From positions 1 to 54,871 of the forward strand of contig NW_021833664.1 in assembly GCF_006345805.1 (NCBI RefSeq): a stretch of DNA of 54,871 bases, in the 5' to 3' direction. Shown here piece after piece: positions 7,900-50,485 of this stretch. The stretch comes from Octopus sinensis. Its lineage: Eukaryota. Each line of letters begins with the position of its first letter. Positions within the stretch are counted from its first letter, which is position 1. The translations under genes and the position numbers were made by a program. Under the pieces are notes generated by a model. It saw only the letters and a list, made by a program, of their open reading frames with translations. It searched no databases and had not been told where the DNA came from.

Positions 7900-8415
7900 A
7901 ATCGGCATAGTGATTATATTCCTCAGAACATTGTCCTTTGCACCCCTCACTACGCTTTAGAATTGACAATGCCTTTGTAAACCCGTCTTAATTCATCTAC
8001 ATGGAGAATTTCCGATACCGAACTATGGAATCTTGACTTTTTCACAGAAAACAACTTCGTGCCCTAAATGGCGTACTCAGAAAATCAATAACTCATTCTC
8101 TACAGGCTCAGCAACTCAGCGCAAATCACCCGTGACATTATAAACGGCTGCTGGAGTCTATTTGGGCACATCCTAAGAATGGACTCAACTGCACCTGCCT
8201 ACAAGACCATGGAAGAATACTTCCTGTCAGATGGACCAAAATTTCGTGGACAACGCCGAATAACTCTGCCGGCCGTCTTGTAACAAGACCTAACTTGCAC
8301 GGGGAAAACCCTAAACAACTGCGATGACCTGAAACAACTGTGCAGGCAGAGCCAAAACCGCGGAGAGTGGAAACAATGGTTAAAAAGATCGTATCGTGTG
8401 TGTGACGTGTAGGAA
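7900..8415 (+). mobile_element. RTE-like LINE 3' fragment (also about 40353-40868)
   Basis: Broken frames SSTWRISDTELWNLDFF..RKQLRAL and SLFGHILRMD.TAPAYKTMEEYF...KFRGQRRITLPAVL...DDLKQL resemble RTE C-termini. Confidence 0.7.
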
Positions 8416-8933
8416 TATGACTTATTCTGTTCATGTTCCAATGGGAAGTGTTATAATAATTTTGAAGGAAACCAAATCTCAATTTCTGACAGAAAAGTGT
8501 TATTTTTATTCTGATCTTAAAAATTATTTTTCGTAAAAAATGAATATTGTGGGTTTTGAAAGAAGATAGTAAAAAGTATAAACGCGCACGGGTTAATCAG
8601 TTCTCAGAAATAAATGTAAACAAAAAATTACAAACATATATGAGTAAAAAATCAATAAACTCAATTTTCATAACATCATAATAGTACTTATGAACGTGGG
8701 AATTGCATCCAAAGAACTCCTTAAGTCAGTAAATGTAAAAAAACTGCACAAGTACGGTTTAGTTTTTGGAAAAATGCGCAGATCCACAATGAAAAAGTCA
8801 GATATCTTTATTTTATTTACATTGAATGTGACCGGCTTGGCCGAGATAGACTTAGTAGTTTTTTTATTTAACCCAAGAATCACCAACAGTTAATTAGGGT
8901 AAATACTTAGGTGATTTCAACAATCCTCAAGAT

Positions 8934-9897: not shown

Positions 9898-11342
9898 TCA
9901 GTGCGGAGACTGGAAAAAAAATAAGGAATGTCCAGAAGACAGTGCAAAACAATCCTCATGTGGATGCCATGCACAATTCAGAATTTTTGACTCAACTTTA
10001 AATTCGTCAAAGGCATCCTCCCTTTTCTTCCGGAATGGGAAATTTATGGTTTTTACCGGCCTAATTAAAACGGGACGTCCACGGGGTGGATTTCCGTTTA
10101 TATTCGTCTGGTAAACATGGTCTTTATTATTTCGCCTGTCAAATATACGGAAGTAATTATTGTAAGAACCCGTCAGCACAAATCTGAATAAAAAATGCAC
10201 ATTTTATCAACCTGTCATTGTGGCTGCTCACGACTTGGAACTTGTCATAAATCGAATCATTTTGATAAAGAAAATTCAACTTGCCCTTCAAATTATCACT
10301 CACTCGGAAGGTCTCCACTGGCCGACTTTCCATGGAAAGGTCCCAAATTTTGATGGAGAGATAATCCCGGGAAATCACAAACTTCCCACATCTACTAAAC
10401 TTGATGTCCGATATGGTCCCCGTTATCTCGTCGTAGATCGAACTCGTCCTTAGTGAAGGATTATCTCCAAATACTACAAACTTCAAAGCAAAAAAGCCAC
10501 GTTTAGAATGATGGTCGCAAAGCGCGTTTTGTCTCATGTCACATAAACGAATCAGTCCTTTGGTACTTCCGTAGATAAAAGAATGTGAGAAGAAATGGTG
10601 GAATTGAGCACATGTTATCACTTCCGACACATTTTCTGAATATTGCGGCTTCTTGTCCACCACATCTAAATATTTCGTCATTGTGGACTACTCAAAGCTC
10701 GATTGGGATATTCAATGTTCCAAATATTTATTCTCAGGTCATCTCCCGATAGAAATGTCTCCATGTCACAATTCGGACTGAGAGAATTTATTTGGAACAT
10801 ATGAGCCCCCACATATGACCTCTTTGGACTATTCTCCACGACCCTCTCCCCCAAAGTGACCTTCGGAAACCGCATACACCCCCCTTGAGGCCCATCGTGA
10901 TCAATATCAAACAATTTGACATTTTTTTCACTCATTTTCCATAATTTAATACATTTGTCTGTTTATATGAACAGTTGGAGATAACCGTTGGTGGACAATA
11001 AAAAACGTGAGTGATTCGGTTGTGGTAGCCAACAAATCGTGACTATTTTGGGGTCAATCACCACACTTTTGAGGCAATCAAATTCATTAATATGACTCTG
11101 GAAGCCACTGTAGAGCGAATATTGGACATCTCCTGACTAAAAGAATTCGATTATTCAAATTAATAACGTTTGCCTCATTAAAGACAACGATTTGTCCTCG
11201 TTTGTTTCCCACAGCCAGCATATCTCCATTCTTACTGTATTCCAGGGTAGTGATTTGATCGCCTGGAATTTGATTAATATGGGATACTCTCACAGCTGCT
11301 ATCGTCCCTCAGTTCATTTATTTGGGAAAGATACCAATTCAT
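9898..11342 (-). CDS. PPP2R2: PP2A regulatory subunit B55 (WD40), 426 aa, 7 exons
   Basis: Motifs [40 protein letters not shown]...[11 protein letters not shown] and [10 protein letters not shown]. Six GT-AG introns (25, 31, 27, 26, 27, 28 nt) give a 1281-nt spliced CDS. Confidence 0.95.
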
Positions 11343-16224: not shown

Positions 16225-18250
16225 AGACAAGACAAGTTTTATTTCCCAACAAACCCATAAATTAAAGTTAGGGAGAAAGCCAAGAGCAGAACAAGAAACT
16301 AATTAACGTGGGTTTGATTTCATTGTATAGGGTCATTTTATGAGACACCACATGTCTCTTCTTCGCATATACCCAAAAGAATTACATCATAATTTCCATA
16401 AGTGACGTAACAAATCTTCTATCTTTTTGACTTTAGCGTCATAAGCATCTTCGATTTTTGAATTTAAGTTCAATCCAAATGCCAATTTAATAGCAAATCT
16501 TCTGGTCTTTTCCAACTTTTTCACAAAAATGCTACTTTCTTCGGACCTATACCATCCTTGATAGCCATATATCAAGAATGGCTCAATACATGTAGAATAC
16601 ACAAAAAGGAAAATTTCAGGCTCCAAATGAAATCGAGTTAAGGATTTCAACATTCCTGTAGCTTTCTCTCTTCGTGTTTTGATATGATCTTTAAAAGATC
16701 CTCTTCGGTCTATCGATACTCCGAGATACTCCAATTTTCCAGAGTTTTTTATATCTCCTGTATTTACATATTCATTGATATTTTTTCTTTTACTTGCAAT
16801 CCATGTGACTGTTGATTTTTCTCTTGACAGAGTCAACCCATTGTTTTGGCACCACCTCCCAATGTTTTTTATATGGGTTTCTACCCTTTTCCATGAAATT
16901 TGTTTACTTATGCTTGAATCAAGCACAAGAATGTCATCAGCATAAATAATCATACGACTATTTATGCTCTCAGTTTTTGGTAACTCACTCATTACACAAT
17001 TGAAAAGTAGCGGGCTGAGAATTGATCCCTGCGGAACCCCTCTTCGTAATTCAATTTTCTTAGAAATTAAATTTCCAACACGTATATACGACCTCCTTCT
17101 TGAAAGAAAATTTTCTATCCATAATAATGCGGTTCTCCCAATTCCTGCTTTTGATAACGTATCAAGAAGTCCGTAGTGCCAAACACTGTCAAAGGCCTTC
17201 GTTATATCCAAGCACGCTATTGTAAAAAATTCCTTTTTTCTCCTCGAACTATCAATTGCAGATCTTAGCTCTCTGAGACAATCTCCAGTCCCTTTTTTAT
17301 GTCGAAAACCCAATTGATTGTCAGAGAGAAAATTATTATCCTCAACAAGCCTTGAGAGACGATTGAAAACAATTTTCTCCATAATTTTCGAAATTGAGCA
17401 GATTAAGCTAATTGGCCTATAGCTATCTGCTTTTGACTTAGGCTTTCCTTTTTTCACGACCATACGTACAATTGTTCGTTTCCAGGTCGACGGAACATGT
17501 CCAAAACTCCACGAGGAATTGTACAATATATTTAGTAATCCAACTAACGTCTGGTCCGCATTCTTGAAAATACTCATTGGGATGAAATCCCACCCTGGTG
17601 CTTTATTTTTGCAACCTTTTATCGCAGTATTTATTTCTTCTTGTGTTATAGGTTGGCACAAGGGACTATTCAGTTTCGACGTTTCTTTATAATTACTTCT
17701 TGTATTTTGCATTTCTTGTGGAATAAAGGTGGCTGGATCAGTCTCTTGAATTCTGGACAATTGTTTGCGTAATATATCCGGTATTTCTTCCTTCGGAATA
17801 GTAAAACCATCATCTGATTTCAGAGAAATTTCTTCTTTTTTATTACTTGGCGAAACCATTCTTGCAAATAGTTTCCAAAATTTTGGATTCTTTCGATGTA
17901 GCTTTGAACATTCCCTTTTCCATATTTTTTCTTCATTCTTCTTACAACATCCATTATCTTCCTCTTTATTAACTTGATCTGGATTTTAAGTTCTTGGGAG
18001 TCAAAGGAATCCCAACACCTCCTTAATTTATTTTCTAATTTATTCTTCTCCCGACGTAGAGAACGTTCTTCTACTCCTATTATCATATTTTCCTGCGGTA
18101 GGAGATTTTTTCTTTTTCCATAATTTTCCAGATAACTTAGTAATAAGCATCTTAATTTGTTATCCAGGTTATCGATATCTTTCGGTTTCGAAATCCTCAA
18201 AGAATCTATACCACCAAGTTTCATTCTGATCGAACTAATAACAATTAAAG
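16225..18250 (-). mobile_element. Endonuclease-less LINE segment with a complete RT domain (ORF 16387-17859, frame open to about 17980)
   Basis: Motifs KAPGWD, SYRPISL, QLGFR, LDITKAFDSV, GVPQGSILSPLLF, YADD and YLGV. A putative 3' end AATAAAACTTGTCTTGTCT lies near 16225-16245. There is one frameshift in the A-run at 17925-17930. Confidence 0.92.
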
Positions 18251-19229
18251 GGTTAGATCCTTTAATACCGCGGTATCTATGAAATGGAGTATCACCTAAA
18301 AACTTAGAAAATGTGACAATTTAACCTGTAGAAGAATGTTTGGTTAAATTGTAGAAATATACTGCCTCTTTAATATGCTTTGTCCAACATTTTTCTGAAG
18401 ATTCCGACATCATTTTAGATAAGCTTCTCGTAATCGTTTGATTGAACCGTTCAATAATTCCCTGACTCCTGGGGTTATTTGGTCGGCTATGTATTTGCTA
18501 AATTTGGAATTTTTGAAGAATCTCCCGTACGTAAGAATTTCTAAACTCTGTCCCATTATCCGATTGAAGATATTTGCATGGTCCGTTTTCAAAAAATAAA
18601 TCTTTAAGTTGTTCCGCAACTTCTTTCCCACTCTTATTCCGCAAATTCCTTGTGTAGGCATACTTAGAATAAACGTCGATAATTGTGAGTAACCACGAAT
18701 ATGACTCATTACTTTGTTTGAATCTGATAAAAATAAATTTTAAAATTTTCTACCTCCTTAGATCTATCAAATCTATCTGATATCTTTCATTTGGAAGATT
18801 TGCAACAATATGATTTTGCTCATCGCCAACTTTTAATGGTGTGGAAAAACGACACACTGCAAAATCTGACACTACTTTCCGAATAATTTCCCTTTTTATT
18901 CCGAAGTAACTTCGCATGCAATGGTATTCCAAGCTATTGTGTCCACAATGCGATATGTTGTGGATCTGCTTCGCGACCAAATACATCTCTTGAGTGTTGT
19001 CTGTGGAAATAACCAGCTTATGATCTCCATACGGTTGTCACAGATAAAGTCGTCCATTAATAAGAATAAATTTTTCCGCCTTCTTTCTCAATCGGTAATT
19101 ACGCTGTCTAGATTTATGAGAACATGTTTCAGAATCCAAAATTCGACACAAAAAGTCGTATTCTTCGGAATTTTTGATGAATGAACGAGACATTAACAAG
19201 ATAAATACACGCTTATTTTCTTTATTCAT
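18250..19229 (-). pseudogene. Ginger integrase (HHCC + DDE) with two 30-nt introns (18724-18753, 18296-18325) and two nonsense codons
   Basis: Spliced translation IHNISH...SD(F/C)AVC...RYQIDLIDLRR|FKQ...IDVYSKY...QSDNGTEF...SQGIIERFNQT...FYNLTKHSSTG|DTPF. Stops are TGA at 19038-19040 and TAG at 18498-18500. Confidence 0.9.
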
Positions 19230-19980: not shown

Positions 19981-20567
19981 CTTTTCTATTTATCATTATT
20001 TAATTTAAAAAAATTCGTAAATGAAATAATACTTTAGTTGCGTATTTTCATGTCATATTTTTTTCTAAGTCAAGAAAAGAACTATTGACTCAGTGTTGAT
20101 AAAAAATTTGAACGACTAGTCATTAGAAATGAGGAAAAGATTAGATTTTACATTGGATTAAAACTTGAAAAAAATTATTTTATAGATTGATTTTTTAAGT
20201 AAAAAATATAGTAAATATAAGACGATGTTTCAAATTGTTTTATCCATTTAAATCGTACATTTAAACAACATTTTTCTAATTGATGTCTACTGGACTCAGT
20301 CAGTCACTTTTCAGTCTCAGTCACTTTTCAGTCTACTGCTTCAAAGAAAGACAAATATCAACAAATTGTTTCTATTTCAGGTTGGCTCTGTAGCTACTGC
20401 ATTACAATACAAAAAGCTTTAAAATGAGCTATGGTCTTTTTTTGTGACATTTTGTTTTGAAGACAATTTTCAAGAACCGCGTCAACAGATAATCATTAAA
20501 TGAAAAATATGAATAAAAATTATTTAAATTAAAGGTAGTTTTTAAAGAATTGAAATCATAACAGTTT

Positions 20568-20588
20568 TCAGAGCTGCCAGGGTCTCCA
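20568..20588 (-). pseudogene. Orphaned last 7 codons (W-R-P-W-Q-L-stop) and downstream region of the HES gene
   Basis: TGGAGACCCTGGCAGCTCTGA is identical to 51797-51817; the upstream sequence is LINE rather than HES. Confidence 0.9.
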
Positions 20589-21076
20589 ATTATTTCGGTG
20601 TTGGAGTCCTTCTTTAGGCTTGTATACGGTAAGGGATTCTCGAAATATTTTATTCCTCTTTTTATAAGGGTCAGTAGACCCCCTCCATGCTCCGACTCGC
20701 GGTCACATCGTAGTGCATCGTATCCAGCAAAAAGAGGAGTAGGGATCCGTTTCGAAAGTTTCGTCTCTTGGAGAAGACAGATATCTATTCGGTTCTCCTC
20801 CAAAAAACTGGCAAGTTCCGCCGTCTTTCCTCGAATCCCGTCAATATTCAGGCATTGTATTGTTAGCTTTGGACCGGGATTCTGTTCCACGTCACCTGAG
20901 GTCAACAGCAACAATCGATAGTAAGTGCCAACGTTGAGAAGATGCCGTCCAGGGGGAAGTCCTCTGGTTGGCGGGGAGCAAATGGTTCTTTTTAGATACC
21001 GTTTAGGACTGTATCCGGCGCCACCAGAAAAGGTGAACCACATGACGCACGCTAAAAATCGTATAGAATCGAACAA
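20589..21076 (-). mobile_element. LINE 5' region: 2A-like peptide followed by a truncated APE endonuclease
   Basis: LLLLTSGDVEQNPGP followed by CLNIDGI...DICLLQETK...GYDALRCDR...GGGLL. The homology is cut at 20589. Confidence 0.9.
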
Positions 21077-21322: not shown

Positions 21323-22417
21323 CAGTCCGACCCCAAAATGGGGCAGACCCCAGGGGTGGGGCACCCTCGGATTTTGGGGCACCCCCGCAATTTGGGGCAC
21401 TTTATTCCAAAAGTACATTTTGGCAGAAAAAAAATAAAAATCGATAAAAAATTATGGAATTTTTGGGGCACCATAAAATCATTTATAAGGAATTAAAAAT
21501 AAAATAAAATTATAATAAATTAATTATTTTTTGTTTTATTTTCAATTTATATTTTTATTGTTGTGGTTATGGATTACGAAACTAAATTGAAGATTGCTAA
21601 AGAAATTTTGAAGAAAAATTTATCTGAGAGGCAACTAATGAAAAAGTACAACACAAGTAAAGGAACAATATCAAGAATAAAACGAAATATTGTACCTTTC
21701 TTGCAACACGGCAATACTATTTCTGAGGAATATGACACATTTAAAGCCGATAAAGATAAATTTGATGATCAAGTCTTTGAAATATTTCAAAGACTACGCG
21801 TAGATAAAATTCCGATTTCAGGCCCTATTTTGAAAAAAATTCCTCTTTCTTAATGGAATTTTTATGTTTTCAAGATTTCGAAAACGATTTTACACATTCT
21901 ATTGGTAAATTAAATTTGCGTCAGGTTATGATGCTAATTTCAAAAGGATGGGAGAAAATAGATGCTAAAAGTATTGTTAATTGTTGGAAGAAAATCGACA
22001 GGAACCGTGATTCTTATGCAACAAAAAACTGTCTAACAGATGAACATTTAGATCAAGTTGTTAACGAAACAATTGATGGAGAATGCGAAGACATGAACAA
22101 TAATGTTTATGATACATATTCAGAAACCGAAAATAGTGAAAATGTCGTAGCAAAAACAAAAGATCTGCTTAACAATTTAGAAGAAAAAATTTCGAATGTT
22201 GCACCAAGTATGCTCCGAGATTTTTTTGATTTTCGGCTGAAATTGACGAACAATATCAGACAAAACTCTACAAATAAAAAGAAAATAACTGAATATTTTA
22301 GTAAAAATGTTTTTTGATGTTTATTAATGGTTTAATTTTTAAAAAAATAACAAACCCCTGTTTTTGGGGCACCCCCGCATTTTGGGGCACTTGGTGCCCC
22401 ATTTGGGGGTCGGACTG
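21323..22417 (+). mobile_element. Internally deleted Tigger/pogo element with TIRs and TA TSD
   Basis: TA|CAGTCCGACCCC(A/C)AAATGGGGCA at both ends (23 bp, 1 mismatch). The CENP-B-type HTH ORF (21563-21853) abuts the post-catalytic ...GWEKID..SIVNCWKK ORF, and the DDE core is missing. Confidence 0.88.
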
Positions 22418-23707
22418 TACTCATCTGGGAATAACTCTTGAGGGATTAAATAACATGTTGAATTAGAAAATAAATGTTGCAAAAAAAGAAATACCACACA
22501 ATAAAAGAAACATTAAATTGTTGATTGATATGGGTAAATTATTTGAAACGCAAGTCAGTGACGTAAAAGTACTGATTTAATGTTCAGATCAGCCTATATT
22601 ACAAAAGCACTTTATAATACTTCATTAATGTGTATAAAAATCAATTATATTTACTTTTCTAGTTCATATTTTTATTTTCGTTTTTTGACTGTTATATTTT
22701 CTTAAATATTTTCACAGCAAGCTTTCTCAAATTGATTGATTAAACTGGAAATTATAAGTATTAAAATCTTCTCTTTTTAAAAAGTAACTATTGAAAACAC
22801 TTTTCACAATTTTTTATGTGTAACAAAACCATTTGAACTATTGACTCGAATATTTATAAGAAATATAATGTATTAAATGAATTTGGTGTATTAACTCGAA
22901 TATTAATCAATCAAATTACAAATTTAAGACAGAATAGCGTTTGTATGAAACCTAAAAAATTTTGAAAATGGTAATTATGAATAATTTAATATACTAATTA
23001 AAGTTATTTAATTAGAATCGCTTAATTATAGTCAACTAAAATATCCAATTAAAAGTCAAATCATCAGTGATTTCCTAATTGAATATACAACATTTAATTT
23101 CAATAGTTAAACTCAATATTTAAATAAATACAGTAAGGTAAATAAATTTTAATATTAGTGGGGTTAAAATTCATGAAATTGAGACTTCAAATAATTTGTT
23201 ACTAAAAAAATGTTTTTCCATCTACTTAAGAATATTTTAATGGTTTAGACTTGAGGCGTTCTATATTAATTTGACGAATTCTAACAACTCTACAAATCGA
23301 ATTAAATTTACTGACTCATTATTATACCTTCGGAATGAAAGAAAATAAAAACTAGGCACAAAATGATCCTAGACTTGTTGGATGCAAACGTTCAATATCG
23401 TCCTTTTGTAGGTCGTCTTTATTTTTGACTGTTTTCTGACAATTTTATGATTTTACTCAGAGCAATTAGAGTCCAATATAGTTTCGGAAAGGAAAAAACT
23501 TTTAGAGAAAGCCATTGATAAAGATTTACCTTTCTATTTATGAATACAAATTAATGATTTTTTTCATGCAAAATGTTTCTAATCATATGTGGCGGATTTA
23601 AGCTTCTCTTGGACAAATAATAATTAATATAAATTTTAAAATAATTTTATAAAATATGTAAAATATTGTAAATAAAACACGTTTACAATTATTAACCTTG
23701 TGTTAAA

Positions 23708-25305
23708 ATGGATGATGATCGATTTAATCACGTGTACACAGATCCAATTTTTAAGCCTATTTCCAAAAAGAATAAAAAAGTTGTAATCGGAAAAAGATTC
23801 AAATCTGCTTTAAAAGACAAGCGATTTAACTCTGTCTCAAAATATGATAGCAGAGGAAAGCCAGTCAGACCAAAAAATGTTGACGATCTCAATAAATATT
23901 ATGAACTTGAAGAACAAGCCTCACAAAGTTCTGCAGAAACTGAATCAGAAGGACCAAATCTCATTAGTTCTGGTAAAAAATCACCAAAAATTTGCAGAAG
24001 AAGAATTATCCGATCTACCTACTGAGGAATCTGCGGCTAAGATAACGGAATCTACAAAGAGACTGGCTCTTTGTGGTGTAGACTGGGATGTTGTATCCGC
24101 AAGCGTTTGCATGAAAATGTTCCAGTCTTTCTTAGAGCCAAACAAAGTCAAAAAAGTCGAGGTAAATTAAAAAAAATATTTTTAAGATTTTTAAATCAGA
24201 TTTCGGAAAGAAACGTGAGGAAGAAGATAATGAGAAAGGACTGGGCGAACCAAATTGTAAATGGGCCAATTTATTAGTTTATAGCCATAGAAGCGAAAAA
24301 ACGTTTAAGAAAGTACGAAAGGGAACGATTATTTTATTATTACGCAATAATTGAGTTTGATTCCAAGGAAAGTGCCCAGCTCATTTACGATGAATGTGAC
24401 GGGAAAGAAATGGAGTTGTCAGGCCTTGTTATCGACCTAAGGTTCTTGATTTTAAATTATTGTGAGATTTGTTGATGACAAAGAAGTCTTTGAAGGTCCA
24501 AATGTGGACTTTTGTGACACACAGGATATCAAAGATCACCCCGTCCTTGAGTTCTCTAAATCTTCTCTTCATACGAAGGTTTGTTTGTGGTTTTATAACT
24601 GAAAGAATCTGCCAGTATGGGACAGAGATCAGGCTTGGAGGGGTAACTTGATGGAAAAGGCTTTTGAGGCCGTCGATTCAGTCAAAACTGAAGACCGTGA
24701 TTTTAGTAGACTCCTTGGGACTCGTTCTGATGGTTTTTTGTTATTTTATTTATTCTTGCAGAGGAAGGAGATTTCAAGAGGGAACGGGAATTACTTCTCG
24801 GAGATTCGGGTTTTGAGTACAAACATAAGGCACGTGATTCGAAGGGCCTCGAATGTTCTTGGCACTTTGGTATTTCATGATTTTTTTATTCTTAGGCTCA
24901 GACGAGTCAGATACGCTTGTCCCTCGAGTTAAAGCTTCGAAAAAGAAGAGTATTTTATTATTTAATTATTCTTAGGAAGGAAACTTGCGGAGAAGGGTAA
25001 GGAGGATGACGAACCTCCTTGTGATGTAACTAAAATAAAAGTTCTGTTGATGTTTTTAATTTTGACAGAATGCCATTGCGGAGGATCCGAGGTTTCGGTC
25101 TCTTTATTCTGATCATCGTTTTAATATCGACATTTCGTCTTCTGAATTTAAACCTTCAAGTGTATATGACGCCTTGCGGGATGATATTATATCTTCTCAG
25201 GATAAGAACCCTTGTGGAAGTGCCAGTTTGGGAGAAGAACAACACTCGAGTTCAATTGCTGATAAAATCAAGAAAAAATTAGCAAAGAAATCTATAAAAT
25301 TTTGA
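23708..25305 (+). CDS. ESF1: ESF1 pre-rRNA processing protein, 452 aa, 10 exons
   Basis: N-terminal DDRF..TDPIFK...KRF, TKRLALCGVDWD, LFYYYAIIEFDS...IYDECDG...IDLRF and NUC153-type DPRFRSLYSDHRFNID. Nine introns (25, 25, 28, 25, 27, 29, 26, 26, 28 nt) give a 1359-nt CDS. Confidence 0.93.
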
Positions 25306-25790: not shown

Positions 25791-27021
25791 TTATTTAAAG
25801 CCAGTACATGAGATCAGATTTTTTCCCGGACTAACTGATTTAATCTCAAACTTGACTCCACTCAAAAACTGTTCGATCAACAAAATAGAAGACTGAGTAT
25901 GTAATGTGATATCCCCGCACAAAATCCGCGACCTTCCCTCAGCCAAAGCCATCCACAACACCACTTGATCCTGCATATACTCATCCAAACATATTTCCGC
26001 TTTCACCAACGCGACCACTTTCCTCCCCAACTCCTCCCCAACTATAATAGGGTCTTCTCTATTTCCAAAAATCACAGAATCCCCTAAAATACAACCAGTC
26101 GACGTTTTCATGATAACCCTACAAATTTACCCGACAATTTTACAATATTGAACAGCAACGGTCCCCCGGACTGTCCTCGGTATAAACTTGTTCGCACATT
26201 CTGGCTTCTGGACAGGCTCGTTGGATTATCCTCCTGACAGTGTCTTTTGCTTTTTTAATAGCCTAAACATTAAATAAGCGAAAAATTACTTTTATTGAAA
26301 AATTATTAAAAACATATATTTCTAGGTCCACGGAAATGACATTGCCGGATTCAGTCATTTCAACTGCCTTCGGAGTGCCTTGAGAGGGGACGGATAACTC
26401 GACTTTCCCGCCTCCTTTTGGATAAAGTCCCCTCGATGTTGTCTTTATCGAAGCATTAACTCCAAATTTTTGAATATTTTTCAAGACTACCTTTTTAATA
26501 TAATTAAATAATTAATAAACTAAATTAAAAAATAAATACATTTTCATAATATTTAATTGGTGGTGATGTGGGCACATCAGTACCCCCGCACAATGTCAGA
26601 TGAGAACTAGCTCCTGCAAATACCAGGCAAGGGAGAGCTGCTTGGATAATCAGGCTTATACTCCTAGTGGATGGGCATGTCAATATACCCTGCAGTGCCA
26701 ATATCACACACGTAATTTCCTCCATATATATTTCCCGGACAATAAGTCAGATCGAGTGTACCTACGGACGTCTGACTAATCTTTGCCGATGATATTTCAC
26801 CGATAATATTCACACAGGCCAAATGCTGTGGTCTGATTGTAGAATAGTTAGTAATTACCGGAGACCCGGTATTGGCCTGCCTCCCCGAATATTGTGTATT
26901 TCCATTGGCTGATTGAGAATAGAGGACAGCGAAAGAGCATTCCTTAATATTTGTCCCCCCTTTATTGCATTAGTCGTGTTTTTACCCCTTCTAATAAATT
27001 CCCTTCTACTATTGTATACAT
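25791..27021 (-). CDS. RTCA: RNA 3'-terminal phosphate cyclase, 350 aa, 7 exons
   Basis: LEGGGQILR, PGLRPQHL, GTAGSISL, GGTDV, RGLYPKGGG, LDEYMQDQ and the catalytic-His motif TLHT. Introns of 26, 26, 25, 49, 27 and 25 nt give a 1053-nt CDS. Confidence 0.95.
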
Positions 27022-27119
27022 TGCCACCACAACAATTCTTTTATTAAATTTACTAAAAATAATTTTAATTAAAATTTTCATAAATGTAAAGTAAATATAG
27101 AATTCTTTAATAAAATTTT

Positions 27120-29854
27120 CTACATTTCAAGTACAAATGATGCGGGAAAGTCCCCAATCTGGTCCCCGACCCTTCCAGTCCACCATCCGTTGATATCCCC
27201 TCTCAACATAATTTCGACCTGATCCCCTCGCCTGAACATAAAGTTATCCCCACTGTAATCCTTCACCGCGATTGCCGTAGAGATAGGTTCACTCTCACAT
27301 AAACTCCTTCTACAATCCACTAAAGAACTCTTATTACGTAACTCCTCTTCTATGTAATCAACTAATAATTAATTACGCCTATATTGGAAGTGTTGGTCAG
27401 AATTTTCAGATACATCAAGACTGTCGGTCTCAGCGTGTTTGCCCTGACTGAGTGGCTCAATTCTGTCGGCGGGAAACCAGCCATTTCTATCGCCGACCCA
27501 TCCCTGTGTATATAAACTTGTACAACTTTGAGCCAATCAGTTCTTATATTGTTTGTTTGTACTATTATTTCCTCACCCAAGTTGAAGAAGAGGGGTTTTA
27601 AACCTTCGGGGGTCATTGGAAGTCCTGTGTAGCTCTGTAGTGACGTTTTCTTTACTAAACTCGAATTTATTTCATTTTATCAGTCATACTGAACACTTTC
27701 CCCTCAAAAATATGATTTTTCGAGACTAAATGTAAATTTAACAATTCGACTTGTTGTGGAATCAAGAGATGGCTCGATGCAGAGTTTATGAACCACTCTT
27801 TCTGTGTCTAAACCACATCAGTTTGTATTGTTACGAGTATTGATGTATCCTTGATTGACTAGTCCTCTGCAAATATTACACAACAAATCACTTTAAAAAA
27901 CATCCACAAACTGAACAAAATGTGGGAATCGGAAATGTTTTGAGTTCAAAAATGTTTTCATGTATAAGAATTGTGTTTAGTTCTCTAAGTCTGACTTTTT
28001 TGTATTTACATCATTTTTTGAATTGTATTAAACTAATCGTCAATATTGAGTGGCGATTTGTCATAAAATGTATATTTTGAATTATTCGAAGTTTGTTTTA
28101 ATGAAAAAGAATTCTCTAAATCAGCAATTTTGTTTCAAACTTTGGATTCTCTTTTTAAGGTCACATTGCATACAAGCAAATAATCTTGTTGTTGATATCC
28201 TTGATTCTGTGGTTGTTAATATTATAAGTGACCAGTTTTTTCACGATTAGAACAAGTCGGGAGACTAGGAATATGTATCTGATATTAAGTTATATGTTTA
28301 GAATACCTTCCTTTGAATATCAGGTCGTGTTTGGAGTTTTTTACTTGTAGAAAACCACTTTTTTGAATCACTCCAAACATCCAAAATGGCTCGTTGTTTG
28401 GCTTAAAATAATATTTATACTTACCAATGCAATCTCATTTATCCTATAAATAATATTTCATAAAAATTAAAAACTCTTTTTCTAGTGCAATCTGGTTGGC
28501 TCTTGTATTGATACTGTTTGAATAACTGTTGATAAAATCTGCCAAATCCTATTGCACAATAATTTAAGCATAAAAAACACTGTAATCAAGTTGTGTGGAC
28601 TTGAGGCACTTTATTTTCAAATTTTCGTTGTTTGCCTCTTTGCAAGCTCGCTTAGGTATAAAGTAGGGACCTTACAGTAAAAAGCAGATTATATCGAAGG
28701 ATGTGTTGCATAGGAAGCAATAGCAAGTCCCCAATTTCTTTTTTATTACCATGAAAGGCTTTCTCACATGACTAAGATAATCTACCAAGTCGATACTTTA
28801 ATGGCCAAATGGACTTGTTGGTTGTTTTTCCGGTACTCGTGAATGAGTAATTTTGACTGAACTGTGTTCCCGACAAGTTCTCCATACAAATAAAAATACT
28901 TGCAGTAGCGAGCGTAAAGTTTTGCGATTTGATTGAACGACTTGGCCTCATCCAAAGACTCAACAAGGCTTCTGTGCAGCATGTAAATTTCCTGAAATTT
29001 TTAAGACTTTAAAACCTGAATGTTAGGAAATATTAGTTCAATATCGTTTTCTGGAATTAGTTTGTTCATTGCAGGAATGTAGCCCTAGTAGATTACGATT
29101 AATTTTTTAATACATTTACGATTTTTTTGAGATTTTCCAAGTATATATGCTCCACTAGAATGATTTCGTCGAATACATATCTCGTAGAGGATCGATCACT
29201 GTTGGAAGGCTGTGACTTAATGTTTCTTTCTAACTTGTTTAAGGTCGTAAGAGTCGTAAAATATGTTTCCTTTCTTGTCAACGTCTTTCGAATAATTGGA
29301 ACTTCTTCCCCTCACCAGAGGTGGTCGACTAGTATTAGTCCCTGAATTTACTACCTCGAATCACTAAGAGGAGAAAAGTTTTCATTTTTTGAGATTTCAA
29401 AATCAAAGGGACTAAAATGAACAAAATTTTGATACTGGGCTATTTGTCGAGCTGTGTCTGAGCTGGATAATTTTGATAAAGCTCTCAAAACCTTTAAAGA
29501 TTAGAAAAGCTCTTACTTTGTCCAGATCAAAAGCCATGTCGTCAAAGGAAAGAATATCGCACTGGCCAAAATTGAAGAAATCAATACAAGCAATATTAAA
29601 CTTGTCAATGTTGGCTCTGATATAGAACTGAGAAATAAATGTGAGTGGACTACTTGTTCTGTGTCCGAAGAAGTATCGTATACTCCTTGGATTAGTCCAG
29701 GCTCAATTATATTGACTAAATGACAAATTATTTCTCCATTTTCAATCAAATTGACAAAGTCGTACTGTGATGAAATACTATCTCTAATGGATGGGGAAAT
29801 GACCCCAATTCTTAGCAACCAGTCACAACATTTTTGAAATATATCTGACTCCAT
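27120..29854 (-). CDS. VAV: Vav-like Rho/Rac GEF: CH, Tyr-containing linker, DH, (PH), C1-like, SH3, SH3; more than 12 exons
   Basis: CH: CCDWLLRIG...ENGEIICHLVN...QFYIRANI...KVLRALSKLS. DH: EIILVEHIYLENL...DLLLLPMQHILRYNLL. C1-like: PTFCSVC...GLVNQGY...HKLC. nSH3: QSYTGLP...GWFPA. cSH3: GWWTG...GDFPASFV. Eleven introns were delimited; the PH/C1 exons were not fully resolved. Confidence 0.85.
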
Positions 29855-30169
29855 GCCAAATATACAATATTGTGGCGCAATAGTTAATTTATAAGACCAA
29901 TAGCGTCATCCCACGCAGATGTTGAAAATATTTTATTTTAATCAATAAAAAATGTAAACCATTTTGTGGTGGTAATACCGCAAACATTCGATTAATGGTA
30001 ATCAATTAGCCTACATATGTTATTATTACTGGCAATTGACAAATTTAAATAGACAATTAAGACTGTATTGAGATGGTCTGCAAGTGGGGAATTCATTTAA
30101 TTCAATTTTAAAAGCATTTCCTATAATCAATTAAATGATATTAATTTTTATATTATTTTAAAAATCCAT

Positions 30170-32090
30170 CGAATCAAACGACGGGGAACGTCTTCTCGAT
30201 CTTTAGTAGTTTTACAAAAAAATAGTGAACACGTCTTGGTCTTTATTTAATCGATCAACAACTTTATTTTGACTTTACTATTCACTCATTTGTTTTATAT
30301 GCTATTTTTTGGATAAAATTAGTTAACAATTTTTAATTCTTTGTTGTTTAAAAAATAGGGCTGTAAGAGTCGAACCTGGGGAAACTTGGATAAAAGAAAA
30401 TTGGAAACACTATTCCGATTTACAACCAGATAGACTATATTCTTTGCAAGCAGCATCAAAAAGCCTTACTGAAAGACTCGAGGTCATGTCATGAACTTAA
30501 AACCGCAAACTTTTGTTGTTGGGCTAATACCTAACAAAATTTATGGAATAAACGAAAAACTCAAAAGCACTGCCCAAACACGATACGGAGAGACTTTGTC
30601 ACAAAAAATCCACCAATCGAATGTCGTCACGAAAAGGTTACCCACATCGACAAACGGGGTATCAGATCACTCAAACACAATAAACTACTAGACTCAGCAC
30701 CTATACAATAATCTCGGTAGTACTGCTACTGAGGATGTCGAAAAAACTAGTATTCTAGCTTCGTACTTTAATTCCTTTTTCAACACGCATATTGAAACTA
30801 ACCACACACAGAAACTTTCGAAATCTGACAAATCGAATCGAAAAATTTTATTGTAGTAAATAAGGAGGAACGAGACAGTACTTAGTGCGAAAAAGATTTA
30901 GACAAGACGATTGCGCTGGGGATTCGAGCTCTTCCGAGGTTCGTCCGCTTTTTCTGCCTAGGAGCAGGAACATCTGTTATTTCCAAGGCATTGGTGTCCA
31001 TTGAGAAGTCCAGAACGAGAACATCGTCCGCGTAGAGGAGTAGGGATGTCCTGGGGTCGGAATATATATTGAGAAAAAGCCCGACTCAGAGATAAAAGAG
31101 TAACGATTTGAGAGGAAGCAGCGCAGCCAGAGATAGACTTCCACTGTAGGCTCACAGAGTTGGATCCTTTCCAGTAGGTCTCTGTGCCAGACGGTGTCGA
31201 AAGCCTTCGAAATGTTCAGACATACAAGAGATAAAGTTTCTTTAAACTCCATTGCTCTTGAAATGGTGACTGTACCGTTATGAAACAGTCACTGCAGCTA
31301 CGCCCAGAGCGAAAAACCCCATTGCTGCGGAAGCAGTATTTTCTTCTCTTCGGAGTTGAAGTCGAGGCCCTTGGCCATGATTTTTTCCATGAGCCTTGAG
31401 ATAGTTTTGGTTAGGCTTATGGGACGGTAGCTGCTAGCGAGATTTACCGGCTTCGCAGGCTTTTTGATCATCCAGACCTCTAAGATTTTCTATTTTCCCG
31501 GCACGTGGAACACATGTAAGTCTTCGGAGGCTTCCTTAAACAGCCGCATCGGTATTTTGTCATGGCCCGGTGCGTTGCCTTTTGACGAACGGATGGCCCA
31601 GGATCGGGTGATGTTCCGACGACAGTGCGCGCGGCAGTGGCTCCAACTCTCGGCTTTGCGACGTTTCCGGATTGGCCTCCTGGATAATAAAAAATCAACA
31701 TTAAAAAATCAAATAAGTGTCTTGGAAACTCTGCAAGCCATTAAAAAACTGAACATCGGAAGATCTGCAGAGGAAACCAATATCCCAGCAGAATTTTTAA
31801 AACATTCCGCAAAGCAGCTAGCTAAAATAATTACTAATACCTTCAATCGGTCTCTCAAGAAAGACAATTCATTGAATCTGGGAAAACGATGGCCAATACC
31901 ATTACAAAAACCCGATAAAGCTAAAAGTCTCGTTTGCAATTTTAGACTAATAATTCTACTAACTTTCATGCACAAAACACTATTTCTCATCGCACTACAC
32001 CAAATAAAAACAGAGTTAAAAGATTCTTATATGCCAAATATACAAAATCTATCGAAATACTTGGCATTGACATTTATTGTGCGTTTGATT
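30170..32090 (+). mobile_element. RTE-like LINE remnant (APE about 30170-30490, linker to about 30790, RT N-terminus about 31700-32090), split by a second LINE
   Basis: NDGERLLDL, IYNQIDYILC, EDVEKTSILASYFNSFF and IPAEFLKH...IPLQKPDK occur in collinear order. Confidence 0.72.
30900..31690 (-). mobile_element. Degenerate LINE RT nested in the RTE remnant, related to the RT at 16387-17859
   Basis: NAPGHDKIPMRLF, SYRPISLTK, ISKAFDTVWH and LYADDVLVLD, with frameshifts. Confidence 0.82.
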
Positions 32091-32190
32091 TAATACACCG
32101 GAGAAAACTTATTCAAGTTCTGAAAAGTTTTATTCACCTTGATAATCAACAAATAATTTTGAACTATAATTTGGAAGAAAAGCGTTTGTT

Positions 32191-32813
32191 TTTTTGTTTT
32201 CCATCCAAAAAAATACTCGACTTTAAGAAGGTATCCACAACGGTAACATCCCATACGAGGGCTTTCCCGGACGAGTACGGGAATATTGTCATCCCGTCAG
32301 GCCTTTTGCCGTCTCCCTGATCGAGTCCGACCGGTACGAATGGCACAAATGTCCCGCCGATTCGAGACCGGCCTTCACGATTTCCTTGAGGGCCTTGTGT
32401 CTGTGTTCCCTGCCTGCACTCCTCTTGCAGGAAAGTGGTGGCAGTCCCTTTTCGTCAACATCCTCACCGCATCTGCAGCGGTGTTTTGCGCAAACATCCA
32501 GGCCGAGACGGTGAGCGACTCCGATGCGTATGGCAGCATCGTCTAGCCACGTCCCGATACATGAGAGAGGGAGAGCATTCAGCCAGCTGCCAGAGTGAGG
32601 GGCGGATGCCGCACGAAGGCATGCCAGGCGGTGTTGGTCAAGAGTTGCCGAGAGCTCAGACACAGGCGCTCGGCATAAAATAGTGTCCCAGACATTTTGG
32701 AAGGAGAAATCTCCAGGCCTCTCAGAAAAGGAGCGATCCCAGGTAGTAAGCCAATCCGATAAAGCACCGTCCAGGCAAGATCCGAAAGGTTTGAGTGTTG
32801 GACATCAAAAGGG
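32191..32813 (-). mobile_element. CRE-type insertion with 11-bp TSD AAGCGTTTGTT (32180-32190 and 32814-32824) and an A-rich 3' tail
   Basis: SGSWLNALP...CRCG...HKALKEIV...GKRPDGMTIFP...LVWDVTVVDT, flanked by direct repeats. Confidence 0.88.
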
Positions 32814-33744
32814 AAGCGTTTGTTGTTCTTTAATTTCAGTTTTGTTGTCAGTGTTTACCACAAAAAATTAATGGTCACTGGATTGGACCATTAAAGTCTA
32901 TAAAACTATTCAAAAAAGTCGTGTAAATAAATAAAAATTAGATACAATTCGACTCAATAAACGCAATGTTTTCCAGCTTGTTTTCCTCTTGAAACTTTCT
33001 TCTCATTTAATCTTGCTTTTAAAAAATTAATTTTCTACATTAATTTAGTATCGAAAAAAATCAAAGGTTCAAATAAAATTAGTTTTTAGTTTTGAATTAA
33101 TGCGCCTGCTCTTTCACTTTAAACCAAATCCAATCTCTTCGACGTACACACTCACCCATCTCATAGGTTGTATTTTTGAGGGCCTTTATTATTTTTCCGA
33201 TGACAATTTTGTCGTTTTTTAAAATTAAAAACTTCGAAACTACATTCGTCACTGAAAATTGTCCTCATCTATTCAGTGTTTGACACAATGATGAAATGCT
33301 TTGACAAATTATAGCGTTTTTAACTATTTATTTTGCTCATACATATATTTTCTCTTTTTTTTAAATAATTTGGGATGGATCTTTTTCGACTTTTTTGCGG
33401 TTATTATACGTAGATCATTCCTTAAGAAATCAGATAATTTTATCGAGCGTTAAAATGCTAAAAATTAAAAATACCACGTTCACACGAATAAAAAGTTTTT
33501 TTAAATACCTGTAATTAAAACTTTTATTTCAGATTAATACCAAATTACAAAATAATATCACAAAATTAATTTAGGGTTAGTTTAATGATCCCTTTCGATA
33601 TTTACAAAGAAAATATTGTTCAAAAATGCTGTTTTTTTAAAAAACGGTTTTTTTGTATATTTGTTTAAATACTTAAATATTGTTTTATAAAAATTCAAGT
33701 TAAATAAATTATTACTAAGGAACACTTATTTTATAAAATTAGAA

Positions 33745-35176
33745 ATGTCAAAGTTGACACAAATTAAAGAAAAATTAAATAGTCCAGATTATTCAGAAAA
33801 TGGTGATTCTAACATTAATTACTACTTAAATAGAAATATTCAATCTAACAGCCCCAAGCGAGTGCTTCGAGAAATATAATCCAAATATATTAAACATGCA
33901 AATTAAATGGAATAATAAACCTCAAAAGCAGACAAGAGAATTGACGTATATTAAAGAGTCGTCACAACTATGGATGAAGAAGCTGTTGAAAAGAATAAAC
34001 AGTCTTTGCATCGACTTCAATTTTACATTGTGCAAAAAACGTCCAGAACAAGAAAGAAGAAAGATTTCACTTTATTGGAAAGAAATGAGTAGCATTCGCC
34101 AACAGAAAAAAGATCTCAGGCCAATTTATAACAGCAACGACTTACTAAATTTGATTACAGAAATGAGGAATCCAAACCTAAAGGCGGATTGTGGCTCTGA
34201 CCATTCCCTTCCAGCTCTTCTTCAACTACGTCTAAAATGGCTTTCATTTGTTGATGTAAAGAACAGATTTGCAACATTGCTTGATGCCATTATTAACAAA
34301 GAACAAGCAGAAAATGTTTTTGAGGTTTTAGACTCACAGGAAGTCAAAGGCGCGTTAGAAATCTGTAAAACTGGTTGCCCTCCTGGAAACCGTGGTTCCC
34401 TCTGGAAATTAGCAGTTGGTCTGGACGAGCAGAGAAACAATCAGAATTATTACCAGTACATGAAAGATTTGTATCTTGAATATGAAATGATGATCGATTC
34501 AATAATTGAAGAGGATATTGCAGGGACAGTAACAAATGACGATCAGTACTTTGTTTTTGAAGAATTTATCTACCAAATCCTCCTGCCTTTCACAAGAGAT
34601 CCTCACGTGAGAGAGACCATGAGATCTTTGAATGATGATCGACTGTTAGTACTCAACCAAAAAGAGTTGGTTATGTATCCACCAAATGGATACGTTCCAT
34701 ATTTGGGTTTCAGTTACTTAGTTGCTCCATTTTGTTACCTCTATACAAATATTGAAGACATTTATTTTGTTTTTCGGGAATTTTTTGAGCGTCATTTTAT
34801 ATTTTTGACAACAATATCATCACATGAAGAGTCTATTCTATCACTTTGCGTTCAATTTGAACAACTTTTAATTGAACGAGAACCATACTTGTGTTTTCAT
34901 ATGAAAAAAATTGGGATTTATCCGTTAACCATCGCGTTCAAGTGGATCGTGAACGGATTCTCGGGATTTTTGGCTAATGAGGAACTACTTTGCTTATGGG
35001 ATTGGATCATTGGGCAATCGAGTTTGCTCGTCATTCCAATATTGGCTGTTTCTATTTTTTCATTTCGACAAGCAAGTGTGGTAAATGTAAATACTGTACA
35101 AGACATCCAAAACATTTTTGCTGACATTTCAAATATTAGAGTGGTTGCTCTAATGATACATTTTTTTATTTTATAG
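33745..35176 (+). CDS. TBC1D19: TBC1D19, duplicate copy (3 amino acid differences)
   Basis: Same structure at offset 32453; differences are E/D, D/E and N/K. Confidence 0.9.
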
Positions 35177-36279
35177 TTTATTTTTATATTTAAAGACAAT
35201 TTTTGAATTTATTCAAATCCTAAGGTAATCCGTCGAGACTTCCTGTGTTTTTGGGGCCAAGACGCTTGCTCATCTTAAGAAACTTGGCCGCCTGTGCACC
35301 TACCGCTCCAGAGATCCGAAGGAATTTATATTCCTTATTCAGAGGATCTCGCTGGCTGTTTTACGCGGGAATTGTCTTTCAATCCTGCGAGACAGTACAT
35401 AATGGCTAGATTTTTTTAACGATCTCTCTTTTTTAAAAAAAATTAACATTTGCAGATTATTAAAAGACGGATTGTTTGTCGAATCGGAAATGAGTATTGG
35501 TTTGAAATTATGAATCACCAAGAACTACTAAATGGAGTTTTAAATAAAGAATTTTCTATCCACTTTATATAGTTTAACTATAGTATTTTGTGTTTTACAC
35601 TAATATGTTTGATGCAAAGTTTATATTAGCTATAAATAAACGTTGTTAAGAATATTTTTAAGAATAAAACTCAGAATTTTGAACAATTTTTTTGACACAA
35701 TTTTGAGCAGTTTGGCGATCCGCCAGGCTGCTTCCTTTCGATTAATCGATATTAATTAATAACGAATCTTATTAAATATATAGATTATTGTTAATTTTAA
35801 TAAAATCGATAAAGAAATTCATTAAATTTTATTATTTGATATCAAAATCATGTTATCGATCTAATTTGTTCAGACATTTTTTCCTAGTGAAGCATTTTGG
35901 GTAACATCTACGAATTTGTAAAGGAGGAATAATAAACACGGAAAACATTTCAGTAGCGCCCAATAGCCCCTAATTATTGTGTATCAAAGTATGCAATTCA
36001 GGGCTTTTCGTAGGTTTTCAGGTTGTCTGCTAATTATTAAAAACTTCTCTCAATGTAAATTCGGAAAAGCATCATTCTTGAAATCTTTACAAAATTGTCA
36101 GATTTGTTTAAACAAGTAGTTAGTTATGCCAAAATTTAATTTTTATTAATCAAAATATTGGAAAATAAATTTAATTATTTTTTTTACATATTTATGATTA
36201 TATTTTTATAACATATTATCATAAATAAAATAAATAACGAAAGAACTTGTTGTTGTTTATATTTTTGCTGGCTACAAAT

Positions 36280-38661: not shown

Positions 38662-38733
38662 TTCTTATTTTTACCGTTACTGAAATTTTTCTTTGTTTTA
38701 TTATATATGGCTTCTTTTTAATAAAGGCGTATT

Positions 38734-39195
38734 TATTACGATAATAAATACGCAATACAATTAGCTAATTAATTGTAATTTACTAGAAGTTAATAAAGCC
38801 ATCCATCCGAAGTGGACCCCGCCAACATAATTGACGTTGCGTTGCCTCTCACGATAGCAACGGAGATCAACTGGAGAAGCCACCGGGTCTCACGTGTGTC
38901 GTGGCTTTTTAATGTGACTAAGCGTCCAAGGTTCTTTAGGAAGTGAAGCGATTTCCCACTTATTCCTCCAGTTGTCTCGACCACAATCGGACAGAACACA
39001 AATCGGTCTCGCAGCGCTTCATATTTTCTCTTCTTTGCCCTCATCGTTGTTTCCGCGCCATACAGTGTGTCCACTGCGCTCCCGGCAATGTTGGACGGGT
39101 AGAGTGTGTCTACACAGGTTGCGTCCCAGACTAGGGGTTTCCCCTCTTTAAATAGGAAAATTGTGATCCCATCAGGACGTTTGCGTCCCTGTCTT
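38734..39195 (-). mobile_element. Same CRE insertion in copy 2
   Basis: Offset 32453; identical ORF translation. Confidence 0.88.
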
Positions 39196-42100: not shown

Positions 42101-42348
42101 TTAAACACAGGAATGGCTTGAAATAGAAAATTATGACGATCAAGTTGTCGCGACAATGAATAATCTTATCACTAAACAAGAACTACAAATGTTAGTTGAT
42201 TTACCTAAAAAGTCATAATCCTTCATGAAGAAAAAACGAAAAACTACGAAAAATGACTAATACCGAATGATCACTATAATTCTACAATTTAAAGATGTAG
42301 TCTCTTTAAGTATAAATACTTGTCAAATTATAACATAGAAAAAGTACA

Positions 42349-43793
42349 TCAGTGCGGAGACTGGAAAAAAAATAAGGAATGTCCAGAAGACAGTGCAAAA
42401 CAATCCTCATGTGGATGCCATGCACAATTCAGAATTTTTGACTCAACTTTAAATTCGTCAAAGGCATCCTCCCTTTTCTTCCGGAATGGGAAATTTATGG
42501 TTTTTACCGGCCTAATTAAAACGGGACGTCCACGGGGTGGATTTCCGTTTATATTCGTCTGGTAAACATGGTCTTTATTATTTCGCCTGTCAAATATACG
42601 GAAGTAATTATTGTAAGAACCCGTCAGCACAAATCTGAATAAAAAATGCACATTTTATCAACCTGTCATTGTGGCTGCTCACGACTTGGAACTTGTCATA
42701 AATCGAATCATTTTGATAAAGAAAATTCAACTTGCCCTTCAAATTATCACTCACTCGGAAGGTCTCCACTGGCCGACTTTCCATGGAAAGGTCCCAAATT
42801 TTGATGGAGAGATAATCCCGGGAAATCACAAACTTCCCACATCTACTAAACTTGATGTCCGATATGGTCCCCGTTATCTCGTCGTAGATCGAACTCGTCC
42901 TTAGTGAAGGATTATCTCCAAATACTACAAACTTCAAAGCAAAAAAGCCACGTTTAGAATGATGGTCGCAAAGCGCGTTTTGTCTCATGTCACATAAACG
43001 AATCAGTCCTTTGGTACTTCCGTAGATAAAAGAATGTGAGAAGAAATGGTGGAATTGAGCACATGTTATCACTTCCGACACATTTTCTGAATATTGCGGC
43101 TTCTTGTCCACCACATCTAAATATTTCGTCATTGTGGACTACTCAAAGCTCGATTGGGATATTCAATGTTCCAAATATTTATTCTCAGGTCATCTCCCGA
43201 TAGAAATGTCTCCATGTCACAATTCGGACTGAGAGAATTTATTTGGAACATATGAGCCCCCACATATGACCTCTTTGGACTATTCTCCACGACCCTCTCC
43301 CCCAAAGTGACCTTCGGAAACCGCATACACCCCCCTTGAGGCCCATCGTGATCAATATCAAACAATTTGACATTTTTTTCACTCATTTTCCATAATTTAA
43401 TACATTTGTCTGTTTATATGAACAGTTGGAGATAACCGTTGGTGGACAATAAAAAACGTGAGTGATTCGGTTGTGGTAGCCAACAAATCGTGACTATTTT
43501 GGGGTCAATCACCACACTTTTGAGGCAATCAAATTCATTAATATGACTCTGGAAGCCACTGTAGAGCGAATATTGGACATCTCCTGACTAAAAGAATTCG
43601 ATTATTCAAATTAATAACGTTTGCCTCATTAAAGACAACGATTTGTCCTCGTTTGTTTCCCACAGCCAGCATATCTCCATTCTTACTGTATTCCAGGGTA
43701 GTGATTTGATCGCCTGGAATTTGATTAATATGGGATACTCTCACAGCTGCTATCGTCCCTCAGTTCATTTATTTGGGAAAGATACCAATTCAT
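42349..43793 (-). CDS. PPP2R2: PP2A B55, duplicate copy
   Basis: Offset 32451; identical ORF translations. Confidence 0.95.
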
Positions 43794-50224: not shown

Positions 50225-50485
50225 TACTATTTTCTTAATCTTCAAAGAATTTTGATTTTCAATAAATGTTTCATTTTCCGTGTATTGAATGCTTAAAAAA
50301 TTTTCAACTTTGAAAAGATCGAGAATGCCTGTTTTTCTGATTGTTGTATTATTAATATTGATTTCAAGTTGTCAATCAATAGTACAATTCTTTTTTTTCT
50401 TTTTGAGCTGAATATTAAAAATTGATCAACTAATCCATAAATATAGATTAGCCATTCAAGCTCATTGTGAATTATAATACTAAAT

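Follow-up and report, generated by a model that had tools for sequence, protein, structure and literature searches.

Two nearly identical segments, lying in the same orientation on one contig of an Octopus sinensis assembly, end at the same base and then part company: one runs on into an intact HES-like gene, the other into the middle of a retrotransposon. How this junction arose, whether it belongs to a chromosome or to the assembly, and whose chromosome it would be, are the questions that this locus raises. A preliminary description had read it as the novel junction of a tandem duplication that cuts through a LINE exactly at the WRPW codons of a HES gene.

The window, by which we mean the whole stretch of DNA that was analysed (54,871 bp), is the entire record VCDQ01011528.1 of the Octopus sinensis assembly GCA_006345805.1, window position 1 being record position 1. 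The roughly 12 kb upstream of the window, in which second copies of ESF1, RTCA and Vav had been predicted, thus fall outside the record. We take the assembly to be a long-read draft and the record to be one of its small unplaced contigs. It contains no N and no gap. By self-BLAST and MAFFT alignment, positions 1-20588 match 32454-51817 in direct orientation at 99.4-99.7 % identity per block, and the identity of the two copies ends at 20588/51817, the first base of the TGG that opens WRPW, which confirms to the base the edge given in the preliminary description. A global alignment shows 41 substitutions in 18,588 aligned columns (0.22 %), together with about fourteen small indels and three large ones, the copies being 20.6 kb and 19.4 kb long. 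The resulting layout is as follows:

1 to 20588: copy 1 (R1), matching 32454-51817 and starting at the contig end
20589 to 32453: spacer U, 11.9 kb, single copy in the window
32454 to 51817: copy 2 (R2), running on without a break into spacer U on the left and into the HES gene on the right

The unit length of 31,229 bp (20589-51817) proposed earlier is arithmetically correct, and the window displays the last 1.66 units of the proposed tandem structure. Both ends of the contig lie in retroelements, the last 120 bp (54751-54870) being a LINE endonuclease fragment. Near the right end lies a Tc1/mariner-like element with 77 % inverted repeats (53678-53869 and 54472-54661), between which a DDE_3 ORF fragment is found at 54074-54337.

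Two further contigs of the same assembly carry parts of the locus, VCDQ01001009.1 (509 kb), labelled L004, L005 and L008 where coordinates on it are given, and VCDQ01012945.1 (37.6 kb), labelled L006. The following genes and elements were found in the spacer:

21324 to 22417: DNA transposon of 1.1 kb with CAGTCCGACCCC terminal inverted repeats, a TA target-site duplication and HTH-like ORFs
about 23696 to 25302, plus strand: ESF1
about 25791 to 27040, minus strand: RTCA
about 27123 to 29899, minus strand: Vav-like GEF, a weak match (CH E 0.039, RhoGEF E 0.011, SH3 at threshold)
30962 to 32663: retroelement fragments, reaching from spacer U into copy 2

ESF1 and RTCA, which had been named in this spacer before, are thus confirmed, and Vav is recovered weakly, at the E values listed. 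The DNA transposon is present in the window haplotype and its site is empty on the 509-kb contig. Brute-force reconstruction of an RTC gene model returned more than 200 solutions. The RTCA RefSeq model (L008 10001-11726; P0103 = XP_029655333.1, "LOW QUALITY PROTEIN: RNA 3'-terminal phosphate cyclase-like") begins within the 3' end of the Vav-like gene, about 480 bp upstream of the first ORF piece with homology to RTC, and comprises just 305 aa over 1,726 bp; a gene predictor unable to model ultrashort introns is the likely reason for this misfit. The exon search for RTCA came back empty though the 100 % identical protein P0103 is annotated, so that the word-indexed search gives false negatives. 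An exact look-up of ten window ORFs found none of them annotated.

The contig is, with high probability, DNA of a dicyemid-like parasite and not of the octopus. The sole 100 % protein match of the window is an "Octopus sinensis" TBC1D19-like protein on the same contig, this protein is about 35 % identical to its O. bimaculoides orthologue, and the best non-self protein matches lie at 35-42 % overall (42 % for RTCA); the best TBC1D19 matches in Logan are from runs SRR24442795 and SRR30522651. The long proteins of the window are encoded in single ORFs, and where introns are present they are of about 30 nt or less in genes of metazoan type: 26 nt in the HES-like gene, 31, 27 and 28 nt in PP2A-B55, and 27 and 25 nt in a helicase on the 509-kb contig. 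GC content is 34 % in the window and 34-38 % across the dicyemid-like contigs. The combination of 25-31-nt introns, lack of close relatives and low GC argues for a non-octopus, dicyemid-like origin; among animals, introns below 30 nt have been reported just in myxobolids and Dicyema (PMC13644364). Dicyema japonicum lives in the kidneys of O. sinensis, and its genome has 36.7 % GC, 49 % repeats with many LINEs, and 1.24 % heterozygosity, the parasites normally being pooled (PMC6736024). Our locus resembles that genome in host, in AT-richness (34 % GC), in LINE and repeat content and in compact genes with ultrashort introns, a likeness in described features and not a species assignment. Dicyemid-like signatures, that is 25-31-nt introns or near-identity to the locus, were found on three contigs, of 54.9 kb, 37.6 kb and 509 kb. 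The RefSeq proteins XP_029656385/6, XP_029657269, XP_029655331, XP_029655333 and XP_029655350 very probably come from the dicyemid-like parasite. The LINE family met at the junction also occurs on three more contigs of 0.37-0.43 Mb (P0100-P0102).

On its right side, copy 2 runs into a complete gene:

51797 to 52156, minus strand: intact minimal HES-like gene with exons 52156-52019, 51992-51931 and 51866-51797

Its two introns of 26 and 64 nt are both GT-AG, and the spliced product of 89 aa consists of a bHLH domain plus WRPWQL. Pfam HLH is matched at 29.6 bits (cutoff 20.7), and the best solved-structure match is the bHLH of HES-1 (E 2.5e-4). WRPW occupies residues 84-87 and is followed by QL and the stop; in HES proteins this motif binds Groucho. 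The protein is thus like the HES / Hairy-Enhancer-of-split repressors in its bHLH and in WRPW near the C-terminus, but it differs from them in having just 89 aa, in carrying QL after WRPW, in the spacing of about 16 residues from helix 2 to WRPW with no match to an Orange domain at E up to 1, and in a basic region that reads KYLVERKRR against KPIMEKRRR in HES-1, with Tyr for the proline of the family. Since it has neither the Orange domain nor the basic-region proline, we call it HES-like and not a canonical family member; it may be a HES that has become reduced in an animal that is itself reduced. Within exon 3 the breakpoint separates Ile83 from Trp84 and adjoins an A8 run. All of the gene except its last six codons and the 3' UTR lies beyond the end of the repeat at 51817, so the earlier expectation that HES is excluded from the duplicated unit holds.

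The sequences that meet at the junction are the following:

20429 to 21043, minus strand: chimeric ORF that spans the junction, 204 aa when counted from the ATG of the sister LINE annotation
20568 to 20588, minus strand: orphan HES tail, WRPWQL plus stop, followed at lower coordinates by the duplicated HES 3' UTR
20585 to 20588: junction microhomology TGGA (minus-strand reading), common to the LINE parent and the HES parent
20585 to 21058, minus strand: 5' stump of a young APE-type LINE, 474 bp, cut at the junction, 99.8 % identical to L004 (VCDQ01001009.1) 9986-10459

On the minus strand 51817-51806 reads TGG AGA CCC TGG (WRPW), followed by CAG CTC TGA, and in all six frames of the window the WRPW motif occurs at just these two places, in the intact gene and in the orphan tail. 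With a slash marking the join, the LINE parent reads ...ATAATTGGA/ATCTC (in longer form ...GAAATAATTGGA/ATCTCAC), the HES parent ...AAATA/TGGAGACC (in longer form ...AAAAATA/TGGAGACCCTGG) and the junction itself ...ATAATTGGAGACC (in longer form ...GAAATAATTGGAGACCCTGG); past the breakpoint, the unrearranged copy of the LINE continues as ATCTCACTT... The join is clean, without inserted bases, and 4 bp are common to the two sides; in trials of random joins within this sequence, 2.6 % reached a microhomology of at least 4 bp (p = 0.026). Because the LINE sequence itself extends through 20588-20585, the position of the join is ambiguous over these 4 bp and the boundary between 20588 and 20589 is only its upper edge. 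A breakpoint "exactly at the WRPW codon" therefore describes correctly where identity ends, the real interval being the TGGA at 20585-20588. The overlap with the WRPW codons has no evident function and looks like chance.

As had been described, and as ORFs and Pfam matches bear out, copy 2 leads into the intact HES-like gene and copy 1 into an APE ORF that then runs through the HES tail out of frame. In the chimeric ORF it is the N-terminus of the LINE that reads into this tail; a protein look-up found no annotated protein that spans the junction, and the fusion of LINE and HES tail is probably inert.

The LINE stump on the minus strand retains 474 bp of the 5' end, with the 3' part cut off, and holds a short leader, a 2A-like DVEQNPGP and the first ~95 endonuclease residues, its endonuclease ORF covering positions 4-93 of 225 of Pfam Exo_endo_phos. 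The 509-kb contig shares this LINE insertion together with its 5' flank in U, and there the element runs through the breakpoint for 1.15 kb further, to a total of 1,625 bp with an A-tail, at 99.6 % identity to a reference copy elsewhere on that contig; homology between the window spacer and this contig starts exactly at window position 20585. Since the orthologous LINE runs through the breakpoint, the 474-bp stump of the window is a truncation product, as had been claimed, and this is shown directly by the unrearranged contig. The expectation that "the rest of the LINE" lies upstream has to be narrowed, the remainder on the 509-kb contig being just about 1.15 kb plus the A-tail and not a full element. 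An ordinary insertion end would carry a 3' tail and a target-site duplication, and the orthologous A-tail lies 1.15 kb further on; here it is the 5' end of the LINE that is present and the 3' part that is missing, so the junction cannot have arisen as such an end.

The element belongs with APE-type non-LTR retrotransposons that carry an N-terminal 2A-like peptide. It shares with them DVEQNPGP before the endonuclease, an A-tail, young copies that are nearly identical and, in the sister copy, a reverse transcriptase downstream. That one element encodes first the endonuclease and then the reverse transcriptase is seen in the Exo_endo_phos match and in the sister protein P0095 (PF03372 plus PF14529), and the RT-like ORF downstream in the sister copy on L004 resembles the RVT_1 ORF of the window. 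Unlike such elements, the copy at this locus is just 1.6 kb long, 3'-shortened and A-tailed, and the rearrangement cuts the window copy to 474 bp. On L008rc, at about 4456-4472, the orthologous 1,625-bp LINE combines an intact 5' end with an A14 tail, which suggests the retrotransposition of a prematurely polyadenylated transcript. The 2A-like D-V-E-Q-N-P-G-P stands just before the endonuclease domain in two different LINE families, at window 20870-20893 (minus strand) and at L004 1304-3160 (minus strand).

With both parental sequences identified, the boundary between 20588 and 20589 is indeed a novel head-to-tail junction. The same is not true of 32453/32454, the other boundary that the preliminary description had singled out. 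VCDQ01001009.1 carries at its end calpain, the LINE, U with its ESF1, RTCA and Vav-like genes and the first 9.9 kb of R, all unrearranged, and breaks off inside R; VCDQ01012945.1 starts 4.7 kb inside U and runs on into R. Both contigs, which are independent of each other, read straight across the equivalent of 32453/32454, and in the window an ORF at 32289-32663 crosses this position uninterrupted. The adjacency of U to R is therefore ancestral and the left limit of copy 1 is only the end of the contig, which the edge at 32453/32454 mirrors. The far half of VCDQ01012945.1 must carry either the junction or the passage from R to HES.

Part of the locus (R-left) is thus present in the one assembly in at least four versions. 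This is more than the three of a diploid with the duplication on one haplotype, though not more than a duplication on both would give, and it shows that the assembly is confused at this locus by a mixed population of parasites or by additional copies. Over the first 9.8 kb of R, the sites that vary among the four versions show these patterns:

both window copies against both other contigs: 23 sites
private to the 509-kb contig: 84 sites
private to the 37.6-kb contig: 8 sites
private to copy 1: 14 sites
private to copy 2: 0 sites
either window copy grouped with another contig: 0 sites

The window copies are each other's closest relatives among the four assembled versions (23 sites against 0), hence sister sequences, and not a join of two haplotypes that are assembled elsewhere. 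Differences in TE insertions are frequent among all of the versions. Polymorphic elements include a 1,336-bp 5'-truncated LINE with an (ATGA)n tail at L006 14524-15859 and a 1,330-bp TIR-bounded element at L005 16471-17800; the 509-kb contig ends ~85 bp past the insertion point of the former.

The sister copies have since each acquired changes of their own, and the main differences between them are these:

1562 to 1754: second divergent patch, inside the TBC1D19-like ORF
8298 to 8710: divergent patch with 10 substitutions and 2 one-base indels, all of the substitutions and one of the indels being found in copy 1 alone
16742 to 18719: 1,978 bp present in copy 1 only, interior to a LINE RT ORF
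47573 to 47931: ~353 bp present in copy 2 only in the alignment, by insertion or deletion
50476 to 50874, plus strand: 5'-truncated retroelement of 399 bp present in copy 2 only, with an A14 tail and the 9-bp target-site duplication ATACTAAAT

As the 1,978-bp segment is interior to a LINE RT ORF, it is copy 2 that has undergone an internal deletion, with 1-2 bp of microhomology. Because a TE insertion with its target-site duplication and a 1,978-bp deletion are real events, the copies are two physical segments and not one segment laid out twice.

Substitutions between the copies are strongly clustered (variance-to-mean ratio 4.9, exceeded in 0 of 5,000 permutations). Runs of 5.7 and 6.5 kb are free of them, and the left 9.8 kb of the copies is identical outside the patches at 1562-1754 and 8298-8710. 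In these two patches divergence reaches 2-2.4 %, copy 1 alone carries all 14 of the substitutions and one of the two single-base indels, copy 2 being in agreement with both other contigs; the 27 substitutions that remain are found in the right third. A search for the patches as conversion-prone repeats found no other copies in the window or in L004. Simple neutral divergence following a single duplication would not lead one to expect such a mosaic, which would be compatible alike with gene conversion, with an inter-homologue origin in a partly homozygous genome and with local consensus problems. For the copy 1 patches, the candidates are conversion from a donor outside the sequences at hand and a consensus or polishing artefact.

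We consider it probable that the window records a recent microhomology-mediated tandem duplication with a unit of 31,229 bp that left HES in single copy. Its two direct copies differ by 0.22 % in substitutions, and the junction of a distal end to a proximal start is explained by two parents, HES in copy 2 and the LINE on the 509-kb contig. A downstream end joined in direct orientation to an upstream start within one 31-kb locus is the signature of a tandem duplication and is very unlikely as a random ligation chimera. When the observed adjacencies (calpain-LINE-U, U-R, R-stump-U and R-HES) are combined, the shortest single path is the tandem order. In the event so envisaged, HES exon 3, beside the A8 run, would have become attached, through the 4 bp TGGA, to the middle of a 1.6-kb LINE copy already present on the same strand, 31.2 kb upstream, a join of the kind expected of microhomology-mediated end joining or of template switching in replication. 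The order would then have become calpain, LINE, U, R, LINE stump, U, R, HES; ESF1, RTCA, the Vav-like GEF, the TBC1D19-like gene, a TPR protein and PP2A-B55 would be doubled and HES single, and a non-functional fusion of LINE 5' end and HES tail would be left behind. A second U before copy 1, as the tandem arrangement has it, a germline origin and this kind of repair are the presumed parts of the scenario.

In its direct repeats of more than 99 % identity, single head-to-tail junction, 4-bp microhomology without inserted bases, and breakpoints that lie in a gene exon on one side and in an unrelated retroelement on the other, the locus resembles the microhomology-mediated duplications attributed to MMEJ or FoSTeS/MMBIR. 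It differs from them in that just 1.66 units are visible and in that copy divergence is mosaic and not uniform. The tandem duplication of the preliminary description thus stands as the most parsimonious reading, with a novel junction whose parents are both known, and applies to a window in which one junction is visible and copy 1 starts at the contig end.

The strongest competitor, though an unlikely one, is an assembly artefact in which a single-copy locus, represented by two related haplotypes or variants of R, was strung together through a false or single-read join. Several features of the setting speak for it: a small unplaced contig whose left end falls exactly at the start of the repeat and whose two ends both lie in retroelements, a 509-kb contig that breaks inside R, several near-identical versions of the locus (four of R-left) in one assembly, odd private substitution patches in copy 1 that could be consensus or polishing problems, and a heterozygous or pooled source, D. 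japonicum being 1.24 % heterozygous and pooled parasites the rule (PMC6736024). The small contig, its ends in repeats, the near-identical versions and the heterozygous or pooled source are shared with false (heterotype) duplications as seen in long-read drafts. False duplications, however, normally put haplotypes adjacent to each other or across a gap; the window has no N, and it has an 11.9-kb spacer and a microhomology join between points 31 kb apart. Haplotype mis-layout alone cannot join the end of R to the start of U, and false joins based on overlap need a long common sequence, where here just 4 bp are shared. A random ligation chimera would rarely link points 31 kb apart in the same orientation. 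Moreover, the cut in the interior of the LINE fits a clean two-parent join, and the copies are sisters and not two of the other assembled haplotypes.

A real but non-tandem duplication, in which the LINE upstream of U received a copy of R, 20.6 kb or more in length, appears improbable. It would accord with the single visible junction, with a window that ends before the left boundary of copy 1 and with the LINE as the target on one side, but would need two novel junctions instead of one. In addition, copy 1 opens with 210 bp of a retroelement fragment that runs on from U without a break in three other versions; very probably, therefore, copy 1 too continues to the left into U-like sequence, as the tandem duplication has it.

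Very improbable, finally, is closure of a circle, in which a 31.2-kb gene-carrying segment was excised, or another or programmed somatic rearrangement took place, and reads from circle and chromosome were threaded together. A head-to-tail microhomology junction looks identical for a circle and for a tandem duplication, and somatic genome rearrangement, chromatin elimination and extrachromosomal circle formation have been reported in dicyemids (Noto 2003, as reviewed in PMC6543705). The dicyemid circles described are, however, roughly 0.3-2 kb and non-coding or mitochondrial, not 31 kb with six or more nuclear genes, and the old-looking differences between the copies (a TE insertion and a 2-kb deletion) would have to be allelic. 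Three further mechanisms were rejected: NAHR between repeats, the junction flanks having no repeat in common and just 4 bp; LINE insertion by TPRT, the 5' end being kept, the 3' end lost and the orthologous A-tail lying elsewhere; and a chimeric retrocopy made by RT template switching, the HES side extending over 20.6 kb of genomic DNA in which genes lie on either strand.

As a duplication, the event would be an ordinary one, one more young microhomology-mediated segmental duplication. A circle, if true, would be the first large nuclear-gene-bearing one with a defined microhomology junction in dicyemids. Irrespective of the mechanism, the "Octopus sinensis" RefSeq proteins that are very probably mislabelled matter to comparative users of that proteome, and the locus adds long-read contigs for a poorly sampled animal lineage. 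It also provides a concrete case, testable by PCR, for whether structural variants in dicyemids are germline, population-level or somatic.
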